Shown here: in pieces, positions 20,048 to 48,028 of the stretch
How the letters are laid out: each line of letters opens with the position of its first letter
Position numbering within the stretch: position 1 is the first letter of the stretch
Source of the DNA: Epithemia pelagica
Lineage: Eukaryota; Protista; Bacillariophyta
Length of the DNA: 64,000 bases
Assembly (NCBI GenBank): GCA_946965045.2
Contig: OX337231.1
Span: 1,612,001 to 1,676,000 of the forward strand
Direction: 5' to 3'
Position numbers and translations under genes: made by a program
The notes under the pieces: generated by a model
What the model was told of the DNA's origin: nothing
Databases searched by the model: none
Seen by the model: only the letters and a program-made list of their open reading frames with translations

Positions 20048-21354
20048 ATGGAGGGAACATGTATCATGAAATGGAAACTCGGGAGAAAACTTGGAGAAGG
20101 CAGTTTTGGAAATGTCTTCCTAGGAAAAAATGGAAAGGGTGAAATGGTGCGTTTGATTCCTGCGAAGTCGATCGTTGTCTCTCTACTCTTATCAGTCTTC
20201 CCATGCAATATTTTCGTCCTTGATTCACCTAGCGAGCTGTCAAGCATTTGAAAGGAAGCTTTGATTGGCAAGCGAATCAGAGATTGCGGGAACTACAAAT
20301 GATCATGGCCATTAGCCGACACAAGAACATTGTGGAGCTCTACGAGGTCTTCCTGGAGGGAGATCAACTATACTATGTCTTCGAGTACATGAGTGATGGT
20401 TGCTTGAATGAATGGATCCAACAGCAACGTAAATCAAAGCGACCAACAACCAATTCTCAAGTTCGAGGCATTCTTCAACAGATTCTTCAAGGGCTGGAGC
20501 ATGTGCACCAGCATGGACTATGTCATCGTGATATCAAACCGGAAAATATATTACAGAAAGGTGGGCTGTGGAAACTTGCCGACTTCTCCTTGGCTCGCCG
20601 TGTCAGCAAACGGAGTGCCTGTGCAACATCGATGGACATACTTCGCGGGAATAGGTCCAACTTCCCAATGGAAGTTCAAGGCCAATTCTCCCCTGATTAC
20701 ATGGACACGTGCTTGACATCATATGTCTCAACAAGGTGGTATAGAGCTCCCGAGCTTCTATTGCATTGCGTCACGTACGGAACTCCGATTGATATCTACT
20801 CCACAGCCTGTGTTGTCATCGAAATGTACAACCACCGTGCCTTGTTTCCAGGAAGAACAGAAGTTGATCAACTATTTCGAGTAACAAAGTTGCTGGGGAC
20901 AACACCTGATTTACTTGTGGCCATGAAGCAATTACCCGTTTCGCTTCCAGCTCAAGAGCCAGGAAGTTCGTCAGAATGGAAAAATATCGTTCCGGCCGCG
21001 AGCGCACCCGCGATTGACCTTCTCAAGCACATGATCTCAATTGATCCCCTCAAGCGCTGGACTTGCACTCAAGCGCTACAACATAACTTCCTTGTTTCCG
21101 GTGAAGAATTGATGCCTCAGGCCGTAGTTTCTAGTGCCTCGACCAAAACGACAGGTCATCTCAAGAGGGACTCTCAACAACGTGCTCCGTTGCCACACTC
21201 GGAGGCCAATCTGAGCAGAGCACCGACAACTACACCGTCGAGCATCCCGGCAGTTACATGTCCAGCAAATCGACGAGAGACGCCACGCCATGTTTCCCCT
21301 CAGCCTTTGGTAGTGAACAACCCGTACAAAAAGAGGCAGCGCACGGCATTATAG
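20048..21354 (+). CDS. CMGC Ser/Thr kinase, RCK (MAK/ICK/MOK)-like: join(20048..20146,20233..21354), 406 aa
   Basis: LGEGSFGNV, AVKHLK, HRDIKPENIL, DFSLAR, TSYVSTRWYRAPELLL. Phase-0 intron 20147-20232. Confidence 0.88.
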
Positions 21355-37575: not shown

Positions 37576-37780
37576 GTTTACTCGTATTGTTTTCTGTTTT
37601 CTCTTTTCCTATTCGTAGTAGTTCGTAGTTCGTAGTAGTAGTGATTCTTTTCAATTATTTAATTTACTACACATTAAACATCAGTATTATATATTATTTA
37701 TTTTTTGGAGACCTACTCAAGCAACTCCGACCTTGTTGTGATCCCGAATCCCTACCGACAAAACAAACTCATTCACACTC

Positions 37781-38284
37781 ATGTCATCCCACGAGTATGT
37801 GAAACATATCAAGATCCACTTGGACAAGAGTGCAGTCCAAATCAACCGTACCAAGTTGAAAGAAATCGTGGGCAACTGCTTCACATTCATCACAGAACTA
37901 GACCACAATGTCTCTACGAACGAAAGAGAATTTCTGAAAGAAAAAGTCAATTCTAAAGCAATTCCCCAACCAAAAATATTGGTCAAAGACCACAAGAAAC
38001 AGAATCCTGATGGCAGCTTCCCCACCAGACTTGTAGTTCCTGCAACCAACTTCACCACTGGCTTCCCAAAGGTTGGGTATTTGGGTATCAAGAGTCTTTT
38101 CAAAAAGCACAAGGTGTAACACAGACAACGAAACATTGTCCAAGCCTCCGACCTCAAAGAAAAGCTTGAGAAACTTAACATCACCACAAACAATGCTACA
38201 ATAGTTTCAGTGGACGCAGAAGCAATGTACCCATCCATCAAATTTCAACCCTGATATATGACGCAGTCCACTACTACACTGAAG
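37781..38284 (+). pseudogene. Penelope-like retroelement reverse transcriptase, 5' piece (decayed)
   Basis: PQPKILVKDHKK...FPTRLVVPATNF, then IVQASDLKEKLE, VSVDAEAMYPSI, AVHYYTE; contains a stop and a frameshift. Confidence 0.7.
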
Positions 38285-38288
38285 CTAG

Positions 38289-38555
38289 TGCCTCCTCTAG
38301 CCGTGTGCCCATTACACGCCAAAATGGGCCGTTGGGCACATATTTTCAACTAGATAGAACATGATCAATATTAGGCCTACGGCAACATGTGGATGCCCAA
38401 ACTTTTTCTTCAAGACATCCTCTGTCACCATTGGATACCACATGACACCCATATATGACATATCTAGGTCATAGGAGCATCTCCATTGGGGGGTTGTGCT
38501 CGATTTTTGACATGTGGGCACATGTGGGCACAGGTGGGGACATAGTGGGCACATT
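38289..38555. repeat. Left long imperfect TIR / subterminal region
   Basis: Shares GTGTGCCCATTAC, CGTTGGGCACA, TAGATAGAAC, GATCAATATTAG, CATCCTCTGTCACCATT and GGTCATAGGAGC with the reverse complement of 46461-46707; repeated TGGGCAC motifs. Confidence 0.85.
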
Positions 38556-38989
38556 GCTTCGGCAGGTCCTATGACAGTCCTATGACGATGATAGGACGTC
38601 GTGATGTTACCTGCATCCAAAGCAGTACTTTCGCGCCATTTTTTGTGCCATGGTCGGCTTTCTCAACGTGTCCCGGACTCCTCTGGACCCGCGCTGATTC
38701 GGAACCAATCGGAACTCCATGGGGGACCAGGGGGGAATTTTTGTCGAAAAGATTGTGACGATCAACTGACGACAGACGACCACACAATGGCAAGTTACAT
38801 GTTTTTCCCTCCATTTGAACAGTCCCCATCGGGATTATTCATCATGAAGAGCATGTGCTCATGAGATCGAACCTTTTGGTAATGAGGATCATTACCAAAA
38901 GTGTCAATTTCTTGAGCACAAGGACAACGAGGTGCAGGTGACGACGACGACAACAACAACAACAACAAGCACGAGGACACTGAAAGAAA

Positions 38990-41900
38990 ATGCCAGCAGG
39001 TGTTGGAACAACAGGTCGGTTGGGTCCTGGGTCCAGGGCATTTCTCAGAGGCAGCAAGGAACCTGTGCTAATTGTCCGAGCCCTTGCGAACAAGTCATGG
39101 GAAGTTGAGCGGCTTGACAAGAGGGATGGCAGTAGAACAGGTGAGCTGATGAACAAGACCTCTTATCAGCTGAAGAAGATACAACGAGGCGATAGCTTTC
39201 CTGGGGAATACCGAGTGCAGCAGACAGTGGCAAGAACAACTGCAACAACAGCAACAACATCAACAGCAACTACCACCACTGCTGCTTCCAACCAACAGCA
39301 ACGGCAAGAACAACAGCAAGAAGGCTCGTCAAATGAGGAGGAGGCTTTGGTTGTTGTTAACAGCTTTGCATCATCTGGTGCAGCCAACAACGAGGGTCCT
39401 CAACAAGAAGGAGGGGAGAATCAAACAGGTATTGAAGTTCTTGTTGCTCGTCAGGGTGGTAGTCAGCAGCAGCAGCGGAATGAGAACCACAACCAGCAAC
39501 ATCAAAGAACACAACAACAAGAACACATTGCCATGACGGCCGAGAATACAAGAGATGATGACGAGGGATTTGAAGTTGTGGCATTGAGCAACCGTGAACA
39601 GGCTCAGGATGAAGATGAGCAGAACAACAACAACAACAACGGGCAGGACAGTGCAATGGCAGGCCCGAGCGCCGAACAACGAGAACACACGACACACACA
39701 AACAACACTTCGAGCAACACCAGGAGTGAACCCACCCAAGTCATGGATGGGGATGCAGGTGGTGACGGTCAGCGTGGTGGTGATACCGTCCCTGTCGTTC
39801 GTACTCGTGAGGACGCGCACAACGTGGTCGAGACAATTCTCAATGACGACGACGACCGGAGTTGGATTTCCGACGTTGGAATTGCTGGTCCACCAGCAGT
39901 GGAGCAGCAGGAACGTGAAGTCGCGAGGAATGACCAGAACCTTTCTGGTCGCACTTTCCAACACACAACAGATGAGGATAATGCATCAGCCGTGTCGTTG
40001 GATGACTACTTCAACGACTTGGAGGACTATCTGTTTTTGTTTTCGGACGACGAGGATGCCATTGATCCTAACAGTTTGGCACTCGCACACGAAATTGAGA
40101 GCAGGGAGGAGCACAGGAACAGGTATACAAACTATATAAACAGAAAGAAACAACTGATAGAAGAAAACTGGACAGTGACCCTCGAGCCACCCAGCGAAAA
40201 TGGTATTGATATTGGCGACAGAGTCCGGGAGAACAAAAGGAACAATCCACGTTTCGGAATTGTGGTTGAAAAGCATCCGGATAGTATCCCTGGCACTCCT
40301 TTGTGGAATGTGCTCTTCGACGGAGACGAGGAAGAGACACTAGCGCTTACAGGCAGGAATGACCTGCGCAAGATTTATGACAATCGGAGTTTCACTTGGC
40401 AAATTGTTGATGGCGATACAGTACCCGACAACCTTGTTGAAGAATTCGAGAGTGTTGGTGTTGTTGGCTTTGACTTTCGCCAGTCATTTGCTCACAGCAA
40501 CTTGTCTACAACAAACCAACGCTATGACTTTCCATTCCTGCGTCTGCTGATCCACATGTGGCCAGGTAAGTCGTTGATTGTCGAGTTTCCTGTTGGTGTC
40601 ACAATGAAAAGGGTCTCAGTATTAATGGCGTGTTTGTCTTACAGGGAGTTGGCGAGAGCAGCTGCATAGGTTGAATGAAGCAATCAACGAACGCAATCAG
40701 GGCAGAGTCCGAAGCCGCCATATCCGTTGCGTCACAGAGCATGAGTGGTGGGCATGGTGGGGCATTCTTATCGGAGCAGCACCCTGCCACAAAGGTGGTA
40801 TTCGGCTCTTCGATGATACGTCGTCAACTTCACATCGTCAGTTTTCTCCGAAAGTGAATGCCAGCAAAGGTGGCATGGATCTCATGTCCAAGACTCGGTT
40901 CTTCGACATCAAGGAGATTCTTCCCTGTGCCTTTGAAGGGGACAACCACGGTGCGAAATGGAACCAGATCAAACCGTTGGTTGACGGTTTCAACAGCAAC
41001 CGTCGGAAAACAGTTGCCGCCTCATCAACAATTACGTTGGATGAGGCAATGTGCGCGTTCCAACCACGGACAACGAAGACATCAACACTCCCCCATTTGT
41101 CTTACGTCCAACGCAAACCCAAACCATTGGGGACGGAGTTCAAGGTAATGTTTGCTTTTCCGAACTGACTGCCTTTGCAGGTGACCAACTCATCCGTTTG
41201 ATTGTCGTTTGTTTTGTTCAAAAAGGTTTCTGGTGACACAGCAACAGGTTGTCTTCTCTTCCTTGAGATACAGGAAGGGAAGATCCCAATGCGGCGCAAG
41301 AAGTTTATGGCAGATGGAGGCATGACGGTAGGAACGTCGCTTCGATTGGTGGAAGGCTCGGAATATTCTGGCCAGTCAGTGCTTGAGCGTGTTGGAGCTC
41401 AGAGCCAAGGAAGCACAAGGCCCCTTGTATGTGCAGATTCTTGGTTTGGCAGCGTCAAGCTTGTCGAAGCCATGAAGTGCATGTACCGTGAACCACGAGA
41501 GCCGACAGCTCGTGATCGTCGGACCTACACTCTGTGTGTAGACAAAGTGCGGGGGAACAACCAGGATGCGCCCGAAGTCATTTGTTCCATCAAAACCAAC
41601 AATGGCTTGTTCCCCCAAGAAGAATTGAAAAAGGAGATGGAACCCTTTCCATCGGGATCGTATCTTGTGATGGAGAGCGTGGCACCAGGTACCAACGTCA
41701 ACCTGGTTGCCATCGCATACAAATACAATTCACGCAAGACTCTCTTTTTCGCCATGTCAAGAGATGCGGAGACTACGGAGCCTGGCCTCCCCTACGTGGC
41801 CAGGTTCGCTGATGAACATGGCAACGTCAGAGAGCGCCGCGTCCTACGGCCGAAATGTTTGTCTGTGTATTTTGGAGCGGCCAATCTCATTGATGTCCAC

Positions 41901-42737
41901 AATCACCTTCGACAGGGTGTGTTGCGGCTTGAAATGCTGTGGAAAACGCCAAACCCATGGTTTAGGCTTATCACCACGATAATCGGTATCACGGTGGTTG
42001 ATTGTTTTTTGGCGACCAAGTACCATTTGGGTGGCAGGCAGTCTCCAGTCTCGTCGGGAGTGGAGTATTTTGCAGATTGTTTGGCATGGGATCTTTCCCA
42101 CAACCAGTTAAACAACAACCTTGACCGTCGAGGTCAGGCCCGCCCCAATATTGCTTCAAATGTCGTTGAAGCTGAGGATGGTACTGCTGGACTTCAGCAA
42201 AGGTCGCTGACAGAACAGGCCACACAATTCGCAAAGCAGATGCTGGAGGAGGCGTTTATGGCTCAGTTCGGGGCCTCAACTGCTAGTGCTCCTGGCTTGA
42301 GCCGATGTCCTCCGATTTCAGTTGTTGATTTACAATCCACACAGCACCCCATCGTTTCCCCAACGGAGTCATTGACGGTTCAGGATGATGATGCCACGGC
42401 GTGTATTCCTTGCGACTCTGGAGTTCCACCATCTGGAGTCTTTTCTCACAAGCCCATCCCAAATCCCGAACGAGTCCAGGATGCGGATGGCAAGATACGT
42501 CCAAGCGCACGTCGATGCGTCATCTGTCGCATGAAGACGAGAGCACTTTGCGGACATCCTGCTTGTCTTGCAAAAACGAAGACCCGCAAGGTACCGGGAA
42601 CGGACGAGACCAAGACCCTCAAAGGTATTGGACTATGCAACGATAACAAGATTCGTTCTGGGATGACCCGCACCTGTGTTGAAGAGCACAGATACCAAAT
42701 GGAGATCCTCCGAATGCAACAACAGAACACAGCTTGA
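38990..42737 (+). CDS. piggyBac-family DDD transposase: join(38990..40565,40645..41144,41226..42737), 1,195 aa
   Basis: Introns 40566-40644 and 41145-41225 are GT-AG and in frame (MWPG-SWREQ; GTEFK-VSGDT). TLDEAM, RKPKPLGTEFK, ADSWFGS, NLIDVHNHLRQ give the catalytic Asp triad. C-terminal cysteine-rich domain RRCVIC...CGHPAC...GLC...TCVEEH. Confidence 0.88.
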
Positions 42738-42861
42738 TTTCACGACGATTGCTCTATGATTTAGTATGAAAATGAAAATACACAATACATGATTAGGTAA
42801 GACCAATACATAGTTCTATTTGAAGTTACATCCATACAGTTCGAACTAGTGCACTTATATC

Positions 42862-43643
42862 CTACATAGGAGTAGTCAGTTTCTTGATCACAATATTGGC
42901 AGTCTTGTCATCGTCTTTTCCCTCAACAGATTTGCATACTAGCTTCTCGTTGAGAAGTTTCAGAAACGTCGTGGCTCCAACGACACTCATCTTAACCGTG
43001 ACAACCATGGGCTCCATTGTCATCACGGTGTTAAGTGAGTGTGTCGTAGCAATCACGATCTTGCTCTTGACAACTTTGCCACTACTTGACTGAAGAATCG
43101 TCGTATCAAGTTGATTGTTGATATATTGCAGTGGGATGACGAGCTCTGGGACAGAATCATCCTTTTTGGTGCGGTCAAAGAAGCGAATTGAGACTGCATT
43201 CGTGTTGACTCGAGACAAATAAGTTCGCTGCAACAGCAACACACCACGATCAACAATCAACCGACCATCAGCAGAACATTCTCCGGCACTCTTCAGGTAC
43301 ACATTCACCCCCGCTTCTCCAAACACTGTCACTGTCTCCCCCTTTGTTTCAAGCGACTGACCACCATCATAAACCACTGTGAACCCATTAACGAGTTTCA
43401 TCGTCTCAAACCTCTTGCTTCCTTTCCTTGAATTCATCTTTCTGGACAAAGTGATGCAACAAGTGTGAGTGCTTGTTGGGGAGACAGTTCTAACAGCTTG
43501 TTTACTTACTTGCCGTCGTGCCGTCTTTCCACCAAAGAACTACTGTGTCTGTCGATGGGTGCAGCACTACTCCAGAACTTGTTGTTCTTGTTTGCTTTAG
43601 TTCTAGTATGTGTGTTCGTTTTGAGATTTGTGAGTGCGGGCAT
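42862..43643 (-). CDS. Unknown beta-rich cargo protein (ORF X), probably two exons (GTAAGT donor near 43508, TTGTCCAG acceptor near 43443)
   Basis: 195-codon open frame 42862..43449 preceded by a polypyrimidine/AG acceptor with CTCAC branch; the upstream ATG at 43643 joins in phase 2. Confidence 0.55.
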
Positions 43644-43834
43644 GGACGAGTTTTTCGCGCCTCATGGCGCACTTCTCAATTAAGGAAAATTTGTTGGCTG
43701 GCGTGAGGCGTGACATTTGGTCCGTTCGGAACCTATTCCAACCGACACGACCCACATCGGCCTCATATTTTCCGTGGACTCCTGTTACAGGAACAACAAC
43801 ACCACAAAAGAGAAGAAGACCACCATGTCGACAA
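43551..43834. promoter_or_regulatory. Bidirectional ATG cassette, copy 1
   Basis: Near-identical to 45548-45813; carries a leftward ATG (43643, MPALTNLK) and a rightward ATG (43825, MST). Confidence 0.6.
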
Positions 43835-44385
43835 GCCCCAATATTGCTTCCAATGTCGTCGACGCTGAGTCGCCTACAGAACAGGCCATGCGATACGCGA
43901 AGAAGATGCCGGAGGAGGCTGTTATGGCTCAGTTCGGGGCCTCAACTGCTGGTGCTGGCTTGAGCAGATGCCCTTCGATTTCAGTTGTTGATTCGCTCCC
44001 CAGTGTTTCCCCAGCAGAGTCATTGATAGTTCAGGATGATGGTACTGTGTCGTGTCTTCTTTGCCACTCTGGAGATCCACCAGCTGGATTCTTGTCTCAC
44101 TTGTCTCACAGGCCCATGCCAAATCCCGAACAAGTCCAGGATGCGGATGGCAACGAACAACCACGCACACGTCGATGCGTCATCTGTTTTATGAAGACGA
44201 GAGCAATTTGCGCACATCCTGTTTGTCTTGCTAAAACGAAGACCCGCAAGGTACCGGGAACGGACGAGATCATCAAGACCATCAAAGGTATTGGACTATG
44301 CAACGGTAACAGGATTCGTCCTGGGATGAACCGCACCTGTGTTGAAGAGCACAGATTCCGAATGCAACAACAGAACACAGCTTGA
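43825..44385 (+). CDS. Stand-alone copy of the transposase C-terminal cysteine-rich domain, 186 aa
   Basis: Paralogous to 42150-42737 (PNIASNVV...RRCVICFMKTRAICAHPVC...GLC...TCVEEH...MQQQNTA); open frame from its own ATG; 3' UTR duplicated as well. Confidence 0.7.
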   Translation: MSTSPNIASNVVDAESPTEQAMRYAKKMPEEAVMAQFGASTAGAGLSRCPSISVVDSLPSVSPAESLIVQDDGTVSCLLCHSGDPPAGFLSHLSHRPMPNPEQVQDADGNEQPRTRRCVICFMKTRAICAHPVCLAKTKTRKVPGTDEIIKTIKGIGLCNGNRIRPGMNRTCVEEHRFRMQQQNTA

Positions 44386-44980
44386 TTTCACGATGATTGC
44401 TCTATGATTTAGTATGAAAATGAAAATACACAATACATGATTAGGTAAGACCAATACATAGTTCTATTTGAAGTTACATCCATACAGTTCGAACTACAAG
44501 TATATCTACATAGTCAATTTCTTGATTGTCATATTGAAATTGACATAGGCAAAAAGGTGGCCCACCAAAGTAATACCAAGAGTGTCGCCAAGTCAAACGA
44601 TCAAGGGGTCGTCCAGCAAGTTCCGTCCTATTCCACCACACGGGCATGAATGAAGACGAACGCAATATACTCTTTGAAAGATTCTCGATGTGTTGGCGCA
44701 AAAATATTTTCAAGAAAATCAGGATACCAAGCAAATGATATTGGCTGCCGAATTGGCGCTTGTCTCCTCCTCCAACAAGGCACCACAACCACAACAACAA
44801 GCACCACAACCGACACAACGACGTCCAAGTCACCAAGAAGCACCACAGCCGCAACAACGACCACGACAACATCAACGACAAGAGTCGTTTGATGACACCA
44901 CAGCCGTCTTGTCTGCGGCAAGAAGTGCCACAGAAACCCATCAAGAACAAGGCGATTCCGGCAACCAAGAATGGCAAGAG

Positions 44981-45640
44981 TCATTCGGTCATGAGCAGCA
45001 ACCACATCGACGACTCCAAAAAGCCAGCCAGCACCAAACCAGCTCTGGAGGAACCGGTTCCGATTACCACGGGTGAATTGCTCCACTCGGGCGGTAGTCG
45101 TAGTCTCTTGTCGGTTTGTTCCTCCTCGTCTTCGGGATCGATCCACCCCAGACTTTTCAAAACCGCTTTGTTCCATCCACTCCAATTGCGGTGTCGTTCC
45201 GTCTCCGTCATGCGGGGCAGGTAGCTTTGGGACACGGCCCACAAGGTTTTTATTTCATCGACACTGTCCCAAACTCGCGTGGCCAATCTGGCACAAAAGG
45301 CGACACCAAGCGACGTGGTTTCCTTGATTTTGGGTTTGACCACGGAAACATTGAGCATGTCGGCTTGAAATTGCATTATGAGATTGTTGGCCGTACCACC
45401 GCCATCATTCGCAATGAAGGCGAAGAAGAAGAATCCACCTTGGTGGGAACCAGTTACTATTCGTCCGCGGCCACACCCAAAGGTTTGTGGCCAGGATGGG
45501 CCAAAGTCCTCTTGGCCTGTACGGCACCCACGACGGGACGTGGGGCGGTCGATGGGTGCAGCACTACTCCAGAACTTGTTGTTCTTGTTTGCCTTAGTTC
45601 TAGTATGTGTGTTCGTTTTGAGATTTGTGAGTGCGGGCAT
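44981..45640 (-). pseudogene. Chimeric ORF: cassette N-terminus fused to a captured glycerol kinase C-terminal fragment (about 45115-45406)
   Basis: DGGGTANNLIMQFQADML...KETTSLGVAF...W...WNKAVLKSLGW is the FGGY/glycerol-kinase C-terminus; conserved Gly residues appear as Arg (ARLATRVW). Confidence 0.8.
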
Positions 45641-45813
45641 GGACGAGTTTTTCGCGCCTCATGGCGCACTTCTTAATTAAGGAAAATTTGTTGGCTGGCG
45701 TGACATTTGGTCCGTTCGGAACCTATTCCAACCGACACGACCCACATCTGCCTCATATTTTCCGTGGATCTCCTGTTACACCACCGCGAAAGAGAATACC
45801 ACCATGTCGACAA
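45548..45813. promoter_or_regulatory. Bidirectional ATG cassette, copy 2
   Basis: Duplicate of 43551-43834; leftward ATG 45640, rightward ATG 45804. Confidence 0.6.
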
Positions 45814-46418
45814 CTATCAACGGCCGTCGTACAAGTTTGCGCTATCAAGCGCGCATCAAAGCAGCCTCAGGAGCTGATGCAGCTTCGCAGTGCACAAGCT
45901 CCATTCTTGCTCCTTCTGTTTCCGTTTCCAACCAACCCGCGTCCCGGTTGTCGCATCGCAAAAAGACGACGAAAACTAAGAAGGCAGTGGCAACCAAGAA
46001 AAAGAACATGAAGGCAAAGGAGAAGGTGGCGATGGACGTTTCAGATCTCAAGGATATGGAAGCCAAGACGGTGCATGCCAAGATTGTCCCCAAAAAGAAT
46101 CATGTTGCTGTTTTGTATCCAGCACCCGAGAAGAAGTTGCCCTCATCTCCGTCCCCCCCTTGCTTTGACTTGATGATGACGATGCGCTTCAAGAACATTG
46201 AGACATCATGCAACAATCAGCAATGTTCCGATACTGTAAGGAAGTCCGTGGAAATGCCAAGCAACTTTGATGACGACAATAATGAAAATGATTCATCCAA
46301 TGAAAACTTGTCCAGCAAATTTGGAAAGCGCAATTCGTCAATTGGTGTCGATAGCAACCTGTCCTCTGAGTTCTCTGAGACTCAGGAGCCAAGTGTTGCC
46401 TACAAGTTCGAATACTAG
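45804..46418 (+). CDS. Unknown cargo protein (ORF Y), 204 aa, basic N-terminus and acidic C-terminus
   Basis: ATG in a CACCATG context, open to a stop just inside the right TIR region; no recognised motif. Confidence 0.45.
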   Translation: MSTTINGRRTSLRYQARIKAASGADAASQCTSSILAPSVSVSNQPASRLSHRKKTTKTKKAVATKKKNMKAKEKVAMDVSDLKDMEAKTVHAKIVPKKNHVAVLYPAPEKKLPSSPSPPCFDLMMTMRFKNIETSCNNQQCSDTVRKSVEMPSNFDDDNNENDSSNENLSSKFGKRNSSIGVDSNLSSEFSETQEPSVAYKFEY

Positions 46419-46460
46419 GACGTAGTAAGTCTAAAAGCCGAGCTTTACATGAGTTTATAT

Positions 46461-46707
46461 AATGTGCCCATAATGTGCCCACACACGTTGCACACACCAC
46501 AAGCTTCTAGTAGAGGCGCTCCTATGACCCCCATATGTCGTATGTAGGCCAAATGGGGCATCAAATGGTGACAGAGGATGCCTTAAAGATTGGTAAGATG
46601 CATCAGATCATTGTCGTAGGGCTAATATTGATCGAGTTCTATCTACCTAAAATGTTGTGCCCAACGGGACATTTTCGCACGTAATGGGCACACCCGGAGG
46701 TAAGGCA
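46461..46707. repeat. Right long imperfect TIR / subterminal region
   Basis: Reverse complement matches 38289-38555; repeated GTGCCCA motifs. Confidence 0.85.
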
Positions 46708-46711
46708 CTAG

Positions 46712-46897
46712 GCCTCCCGAAACAAACAGAGAAGTTAGCCTATGCCTCGACCTTATCTTCTTACACACTCATCTCTTTCCAAGACAGTTTCTACCTCTAC
46801 GATGGTGACAAGAAACCTGAAGAGCGTGGTCTGAATCGGTGGTTACGAATCTGCCTGGCTGGCTGATCTTGTCATGTCCTACCTCTTAGAGGTAACA
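46712..46897 (+). pseudogene. Penelope-like RT, 3' piece (decayed, frameshifted)
   Basis: SLCLDLI / TLISFQDSFYLY...ERGL / IGGYESAWLADLVMSYLLEV spread over three frames; continues the RT from 38284. Confidence 0.7.
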
Positions 46898-48028
46898 TAC
46901 GACACCCTCTACAACCCAATGCACCAATACGAGCTTTTGATGCCAAAAAAAGCAACTTTTGGCAGAATTCTCACCAACAACTAGGTTGTGGTGGAATCTA
47001 CAACTCATCGACTGATGCTAGTATTTTATGGCATCCGATGACATTTTCGTAAAAGTGAGAAAAGAAAGACGGCATGCTCGCAGACCTTTAAATTCGGCCA
47101 AGGCATGCTCGCAATGCACGTGTTATGAGCGACCGATCGGATATTAATTATGGCCCAACACGTGCGCTCCCAATGTTCTCAAGCGCGCGCAATCAATACT
47201 CGAGTACGCACCTCCACGACTTAGCCCAACGGCCTAAGTAACCGAAGCACGAATCACGATCACGCGAGACCATATCTCTATTCCCACAAATCGAAGAATG
47301 CAAACAGCAACGCGCCAAGAAAACAACCTATATCGCAACAAAGCAAGAGCTGTTGGCATTAGTATATGATATACAAGTGCATATACTTCCAATGCACAAT
47401 ATCCATGTCTACTCCAACCAGACCAGTCCTGTCAGCGCCATGAATATATCAGTCATGCACCCTGGCCAGACCTGCACATCAAAACACACACCGTAGTCCT
47501 AAAGCTCACAATCTAACAATATCACCATTTATCACATCCTCTTTTGTGTCCCGACTATCCTTTTGATAGACTACGACTTGGTTGTATCTCTGACCCGTGG
47601 AGATACTACTATCGGTTGGTGACCTACCTGATTGTCTGCTCTACCAAGCATTATCCCCCATGAGTTTGAAAGAATTCTACTAGATTAACAGTCTCACTGC
47701 TTATTTCCCTGCAGTTGCATTTGGAACCTTACTTACCCATCAACACCCATTACAGATTGAGATACCCCAACAAACAAGAGTTAGAGGACAAAGCTACCCA
47801 ACCCAACAACAGGGCCAGCCTGGCTAAGGCTAGGGTCACCAACCCTCTCCTATTCCAGGACCTCAAGCTGCACCAGGACTCCGTGCAACTACCTTCCCCA
47901 TACCTGACCAGTGAACCACTTTGTTGAGGACCACGAGCAAGACGAGCAAGCTACCACTGTTCCTGACTCCCCGGCTCAACTCGATCACCGAAACGAGTCT
48001 GGAAGTGACCAAGAATAAGTATCCTTAA

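Follow-up and report, generated by a model that had tools for sequence, protein, structure and literature searches.

A piggyBac-related transposon of the diatom Epithemia pelagica with predicted CTAG target specificity

Introduction

Canonical piggyBac-like elements, such as piggyBac (IFP2) from Trichoplusia ni and piggyBat, encode a PF13843 transposase whose RNase-H-fold DDD core is accompanied by an insertion domain and, at the C-terminus, by a Cys-rich domain, and they insert at TTAA. Surveys describe this target as general in piggyBac and regard the exceptions as single, probably mutated copies (PMC5381638). The rule has been restated by Kojima (PMC9587614), and a structural model treats TTAA targeting as a defining property of piggyBac (PMC7351741). 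In this study, we analyzed a 64,000-nucleotide stretch of the Epithemia pelagica genome (the window; positions 1612001-1676000 of contig 4 in a 60.5-Mb, 23-contig assembly). At 38285-46711 of this window lies an 8.4-kb transposon that is flanked on both sides by CTAG and is predicted to encode a distant relative of the piggyBac transposases.

Besides the predicted domain organisation of its transposase, the element would share with canonical members a palindromic 4-bp target centred on TA, ends that are asymmetric and contain repeats, and cut-and-paste transposition with precise boundaries. It differs from them in its target (CTAG versus TTAA) and in its termini, which read CC(C/Y)...GGG in canonical elements and TGCC...GGCA in the window element and its families; the first C, called highly conserved in piggyBac (PMC5381638), is absent. 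Furthermore, canonical terminal inverted repeats (TIRs) are 12-19 bp long, whereas the imperfect inverted repeats described here extend over ~210 bp. The predicted transposase is also unusual in its length (~1195 amino acids), its introns and its long low-complexity N-terminus, and the element carries two conserved accessory genes, unlike canonical piggyBac.

Domesticated ciliate proteins offer a further comparison: the piggyBac-derived enzymes PiggyMac and Tpb2 cleave sites other than TTAA, producing 4-nt 5' overhangs with TA at their centre. Both are host genes that lack transposon ends and are not known to integrate, and their outer target bases are relaxed, whereas in the window element these bases would be re-specified. 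Kolobok and Sola3 likewise show a sequence-specific 4-bp duplication, but their transposases are unrelated, their termini differ and their target is TTAA (PMC9587614).

In 2009, elements "weakly related to piggyBac" were described from diatoms, but with no account of their ends (PMC2806351). The largest mining effort, a study from 2025, kept only TTAACC-like junctions (PMC13461360), so that a CTAG-targeting clade would have been filtered out. We found no report of a CTAG-targeting piggyBac in the literature searched, with Repbase Reports lying outside that search.

Ends, genomic copies and target-site flanks

The boundaries of the element and the features of its ends are as follows (window coordinates):

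38285..38288, no strand: left CTAG, predicted target-site duplication (read directly; genomic copies compared)
38289-46707: transposon body, ~8.4 kb, TGCC...GGCA, with CTAG adjoining both ends
38289..38498, + strand: left terminal/subterminal inverted repeat, starting with TGCCTCC (repeat scan)
38304..38553: five TGTGCCCA motifs of the left end, at 38304+, 38333-, 38515-, 38525- and 38546- (motif count)
46463..46692: four TGTGCCCA motifs of the right end, at 46463+, 46474+, 46656+ and 46685- (motif count)
46498..46707, - strand: right terminal/subterminal inverted repeat, ending with AGGCA (repeat scan)
46708..46711, no strand: right CTAG, predicted target-site duplication (read directly; genomic copies compared)

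The left junction reads ...ACTGAAG-CTAG-TGCCTCCTCTAGCC... (at 38285) and the right junction ...GGTAAGGCA-CTAG-GCCTCCC... (at 46711). An initial annotation of this DNA had placed the ends at CTAG-TGCCT...AGGCA-CTAG, and both CTAGs and the exact termini lie precisely where it had proposed them. In a repeat scan of the window, the two ends were joined by an outer inverted repeat (38285-38385 versus 46611-46711, 101 nt, 78%) and an inner one (38407-38498 versus 46498-46589, 92 nt, 75%), amounting to ~210 bp per side. The left repeat is 100% identical in four further genomic copies. All nine matches to the octamer TGTGCCCA in the window are confined to the outer 270 bp of the element, a number reached by none of 100 shuffles, and their placement is mirrored between the ends (16-23 and 45-52 nt from the tips, plus a cluster at ~227-265 nt). 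We consider these octamers candidate transposase-binding sites. Within the window, CTAGTGCC occurs a third time at 21131; this instance lacks element features and was rejected as a chance match.

Searching the genome with the two element ends returned 49 and 44 matches. Five 8.4-kb copies, one of them with an insertion, show 98.3-99.6% identity across 1.5 kb at each end. A subfamily of ~90% identity comprises copies of 6.5-12 kb as well as non-autonomous copies of 1.6 kb, and MITEs (miniature inverted-repeat transposable elements) of roughly 420 bp belong to the family too. With five copies diverged by at most 1.7% at different loci, the element is, as judged from these sequences, recently mobile.

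The flanks were tabulated for 61 distinct ends extracted from the genome. CTAG adjoins 52 of them directly and 53 after correction of a 1-nt alignment offset in one; the others carry single-base variants, and TTAA was found at none. Position by position, C occurs at -4 in 55 ends, T at -3 in 58, A at -2 in 60 and G at -1 in 58, so that the bases outside the central TA are not variable. Since CTAG occurs only 120 times in the 64-kb window, chance is excluded as an explanation. Positions -5 to -7 are mildly C/T-rich and positions -8 to -12 show a flat composition, indicating that the insertions reside in unrelated loci that have only the tetranucleotide in common.

Empty sites within host repeats

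When the window copy is cut out together with one CTAG, the flanks join to ...HYYTEARPPETNREVSLCLDLI..., which is gapless at the junction in comparison with 11 paralogs of the interrupted host repeat; the closest uninterrupted paralogs read GAAGCTATGCC versus GAAGCTAGGCC. The empty paralogous sites thus hold a single 4-mer. A related result was obtained for a 14.3-kb sister family in the same genome (L074), for which, in at least six paralogs (91-97% identical), the coordinates of the left- and right-flank matches show an overlap of exactly six bases. These six bases correspond to CTAG plus a TG common to the element start and the right flank. Both for the window copy and for the L074 family, the insertion therefore equals the element plus 4 bp.

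The host repeat itself (window 37700-38284 and 46712-46900; also L062:709-2766) has at least 13 paralogs. The initial annotation had described excision with one CTAG as rejoining an interrupted reverse transcriptase; the clean junction held up, whereas the identity of the repeat as a reverse transcriptase was not confirmed. The closest intact paralog encodes an open reading frame (ORF) of 686 amino acids that matched neither Pfam nor PDB sequences, and the copy in the window bears stops and a frameshift.

A divergent piggyBac-superfamily transposase

The predicted transposase gene has the following structure:

38990..40565, + strand: exon A, 525 amino acids, low-complexity N-terminus followed by a conserved region
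40566..40644, + strand: intron 1, 79 nt, GT..AG (placed from the reading frame)
40645..41144, + strand: exon B, with the PF13843 match and the first putative catalytic Asp in LDEAM (codon 41040-41042)
41145..41225, + strand: intron 2, 81 nt, GT..AG (supported by colinear intron-less homologues)
41226..42737, + strand: exon C, with the second Asp in ADSWFGS (41436-41438), the third in IDVHNH (41892-41894) and a Cys/His-rich tail (C431...H488)

With 525, 166 and 503 codons in the three exons and a further codon that is split, the predicted spliced protein comprises ~1195 amino acids. PF13843 (DDE_Tnp_1_7) is matched on exon B only, at 32.8 bits (curated cut-off, 22.4; E 6e-8; profile positions 71-156), and this match spans only ~90 residues of the transposase core. 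With a word search of exon C, 28 related proteins were found, and PF13843 is present in seven relatives (P0009, P0012, P0014, P0021, P0025, P0027 and P0028). In the alignment of the relatives, the ADSWFG and D-HN-RQ motifs are invariant and the Cys/His tail is conserved. The second and third Asp are invariant across 20 aligned sequences, and the first was aligned with the DE of canonical piggyBacs. In an hhalign comparison, the clade alignment matched five of the genome's full-scoring piggyBacs at a probability of 99.4% (E 7.5e-22) over 322 columns, with the three Asp motifs in register.

Structure prediction points in the same direction. The AlphaFold model of exon C has a mean predicted local distance difference test score (pLDDT) of 65, with 70-90 in the core. 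Among the Foldseek matches to this model, piggyBac (6x67_C, E 5e-4, probability 1.0) ranks first and piggyBat next, and VIA-align gave Z scores of 9.1 for 6x67, 5.8-6.7 for Tn5 and 5.2 for piggyBat. The tail contains C431, C434, C442, H444, C447, C471, C484 and H488, most of which are conserved, at a local pLDDT of ~90; alignment of this tail with the Cys-rich tail of piggyBat was not significant. Sequence searches against PDB returned nothing meaningful for exons B and C with phmmer, and the clade profile gave only an insignificant match to piggyBat (E 0.53). Based on the alignments and the model, the protein is best described as a deep, divergent member of the piggyBac superfamily with a putative DDD triad in an RNase-H-like core. 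The initial annotation had called it a DDD piggyBac-family transposase; superfamily membership and three aligned Asp are borne out by the hhalign comparison, but the protein is far more divergent than that phrase suggests.

At the end of exon A (40200-40565), a conserved GDRV...FGIVV...W.V.FD stretch precedes the catalytic core. P0027 carries this stretch at its N-terminus, and the canonical families in the genome begin in a similar way. The stretch showed no Pfam match and may form a small beta-barrel (Tudor/SH3-like) module.

The genome holds more than 100 PF13843 matches. Its full-scoring piggyBacs (L147/L148 and L149-L151) belong to the same superfamily as the window element, show 4-bp duplications, as proposed for that element, and have DxHNxxR at the third Asp. 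They differ in matching PF13843 at E 1e-53 to 1e-58, in being intron-less, in their CGG...CCG ends and in duplicating variable 4-mers (ATCA, ATAT, ATAT, AATA and AAAG), where the window clade would duplicate CTAG. These copies (L147:922-3564, L148:922-3564, L149:923-3557, L150 on the reverse strand and L151:923-3555) form the genome's second group of non-TTAA piggyBacs.

Distribution of the clade

Two further families in the same genome share the CTAG-TGCC...GGCA-CTAG structure: L073 (6.5 kb, 56% amino acid identity) and the L074 family introduced above (40% identity), which has kilobase-long ends built from repeats. A scan of metagenome contigs revealed 70 loci encoding relatives of the transposase. 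Bare CTAGTGC 7-mers are near chance expectation in 195 kb; metagenomic junctions were counted only where they came with extended TIR identity. Three complete elements, L083 (3978 bp), L101 (4440 bp) and L082 (3661 bp), lie on unrelated contigs, have TIRs extending well past the junction and again read CTAG-TGCC...GGCA-CTAG, at a best-segment identity of ~34-37%. Several further metagenome contigs show a single ...AGGCA-CTAG end. The right end of one copy (L075) is truncated, and no clear ends were found for L076, L161 and L162. Scanning the metagenomic loci for inverted repeats in general produced too much noise to be of use.

The most divergent member, on a metagenome scaffold (L159:1-2880), is a 2.76-kb element with TGCC...GGCA ends and AGCTAG on both sides. 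Either the direct repeat here is 6 bp long, or one end carries two bases in addition to CTAG.

In a phylogeny of the transposases, all six rows for which a CTAG duplication is known form one group (Shimodaira-Hasegawa-like approximate likelihood ratio test, SH-aLRT, 96), which spans a 20-row subclade and is parted from the full-scoring piggyBac families by long branches; the tree is a quick IQ-TREE run without broad outgroup sampling, and some of its branches are long. Because the same CTAG-TGCC...GGCA-CTAG structure occurs in three genome families and three metagenomic elements, it is a property of the clade, in agreement with the distinct clade that had been proposed from the window alone.

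Activity and length of the target duplication

Taken together, we consider it very probable that the element is an autonomous, recently active cut-and-paste transposon whose divergent piggyBac-superfamily DDD transposase integrates with a 4-nt stagger at CTAG. Several points weigh against this interpretation. Both the intron models and transposition itself are predicted from sequence. The transposase was searched exon by exon; exon C alone had no Pfam or PDB sequence match, and its model is only of medium quality (pLDDT 65, template modelling score ~0.19 to 6x67). With regard to the target, the palindrome leaves a TA duplication with terminal G...C possible in most copies, one copy is flanked by 5 bp (CTAAG...CTAAG), and the divergent L159 carries AGCTAG...AGCTAG.

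That the family is extinct, with its copies being relics and the intron-bearing gene model an artefact of decay, seems unlikely. Such a history could account for a transposase reading frame that is interrupted twice and for the rearranged internal cargo, with its duplicated Cys-rich tail and kinase fragment. However, both interruptions are 79-81 nt long and bounded by GT..AG, and their removal restores the frame exactly, in line with the apparently intact enzyme proposed initially. Junction 2 is further supported by intron-less homologues, whose ...RKPKPLGTE-YK-AADPETG... is colinear with ...RKPKPLGTEFK/VSGDTATG... in the window (slash, junction). The low divergence of the five copies at different loci also argues against extinction, as do the non-autonomous derivatives of 1.6 kb and roughly 420 bp.

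A second alternative retains the same element and enzyme but assumes a TA duplication with a 2-nt stagger, termini GTGCC...GGCAC and a preference for C-TA-G. The initial annotation had raised this caveat, which formally still holds: since CTAG is palindromic, this model predicts an identical empty site, and 53 of the 61 ends are unable to discriminate between the two lengths. Ciliate piggyBac-derived enzymes, which act on TA-centred sites with relaxed outer bases, would also fit. Against it stands a copy (C2:131532-138479) flanked by ATAG at either end. This direct repeat is not a palindrome and favours a 4-bp duplication; under the TA model, the copy would call for a mutation of a terminal base and, in addition, for an off-consensus flank base that matches it. 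One MITE flanked by GTAT/CTAT leans the same way. Moreover, the two full-scoring piggyBac families of this genome show perfect and unambiguous 4-bp duplications, suggesting that a 4-nt stagger is a constant of the superfamily, and the geometry of the piggyBac dimer has been argued to fix a 4-bp offset (PMC7351741). We therefore regard a duplication of 4 bp as highly probable and the TA model as improbable.

Finally, the near-invariance of CTAG would also be expected if it were part of the element (CTAGTGCC...GGCACTAG termini, no duplication) or if all copies sat in one repeated target sequence, but this is hardly credible given that uninterrupted paralogs retain one 4-mer and show no 4-bp gap, that off-consensus flanks come as matched direct pairs (ATAG/ATAG) and that the flanks past -7 are unrelated.

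Accessory genes and cargo

Downstream of the transposase, the element contains the following features:

42862..43449, - strand: ORF2, conserved accessory gene (three-family comparison)
43544..43778, + strand: upstream cassette, copy one (repeat scan, 97-99% to copy two)
43717..44385, + strand: ORF duplicating the C-terminal Cys-rich tail of the transposase, 67% amino acid identity (repeat scan)
44981..45640, - strand: ORF with a 44-amino-acid FGGY_C kinase fragment (E 9e-9)
45541..45768, + strand: upstream cassette, copy two, preceding ORF3 (repeat scan)
45804..46418, + strand: ORF3, accessory gene with the C-terminal motif VDSxLSFEFAETQ (motif common to counterparts)

ORF2 shows 39-59% identity to ORFs at the same position in the other two families, with 57 positions invariant across the three. 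Its counterparts (L073:11666-12325, L074:11367-11903 and L075:11158-11694) encode ~180-195 amino acids and lie immediately downstream of the transposase, in the opposite orientation. ORF2 had no Pfam match and no Atlas neighbour, its AlphaFold model was unusable (pLDDT 39), and a homologue was absent from the 71 metagenomic loci searched.

ORF2 and ORF3 are separated by a 2-kb insertion (43544-45768) containing an additional copy of the ORF3 upstream cassette, the duplicate of the Cys-rich tail and the FGGY fragment, which is probably captured host sequence. Copy one of the cassette now lies ahead of the stand-alone copy of the tail, which could act as a DNA-binding competitor. An additional gene of 921 amino acids is present in the 14-kb sister family (L074:4697-7462, - strand).

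Discussion

In the mechanism that we propose, the transposase would probably bind the TGTGCCCA repeats in the asymmetric ~210-bp ends and excise the element at TGCC...GGCA, presumably by hairpin chemistry. Integration with a 4-nt stagger at CTAG would then duplicate this tetranucleotide. CTAG resembles TTAA in being palindromic around a central TA; excision would therefore be expected to leave self-complementary 4-nt overhangs and to permit piggyBac-style seamless repair, and the element may still be active today. On balance, we lean towards the view that the elements found here and in aquatic metagenomes form a previously undescribed clade of the piggyBac superfamily, in which the target has been re-specified from TTAA to CTAG while seamless excision was probably kept.

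If this is correct, TTAA specificity would not be hard-wired in the piggyBac superfamily, as illustrated within one genome by the CTAG clade and the families with variable 4-bp duplications. Such natural enzymes would help to work out and re-engineer how piggyBac reads its target: comparison with a CTAG enzyme could locate the residues that read the outer two target bases, for which the stretch from the first Asp to KPKPLG at the exon B end would be the foremost candidate, and it would allow testing whether self-complementarity of the overhangs alone governs seamless excision. The preference for TTAA has been counted as a constraint on using piggyBac for insertion (PMC13461360), and the rarer, palindromic CTAG target might provide a vector with a different site distribution. 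For diatoms, the elements "weakly related to piggyBac" described earlier (PMC2806351) may represent an active, gene-carrying transposon lineage.

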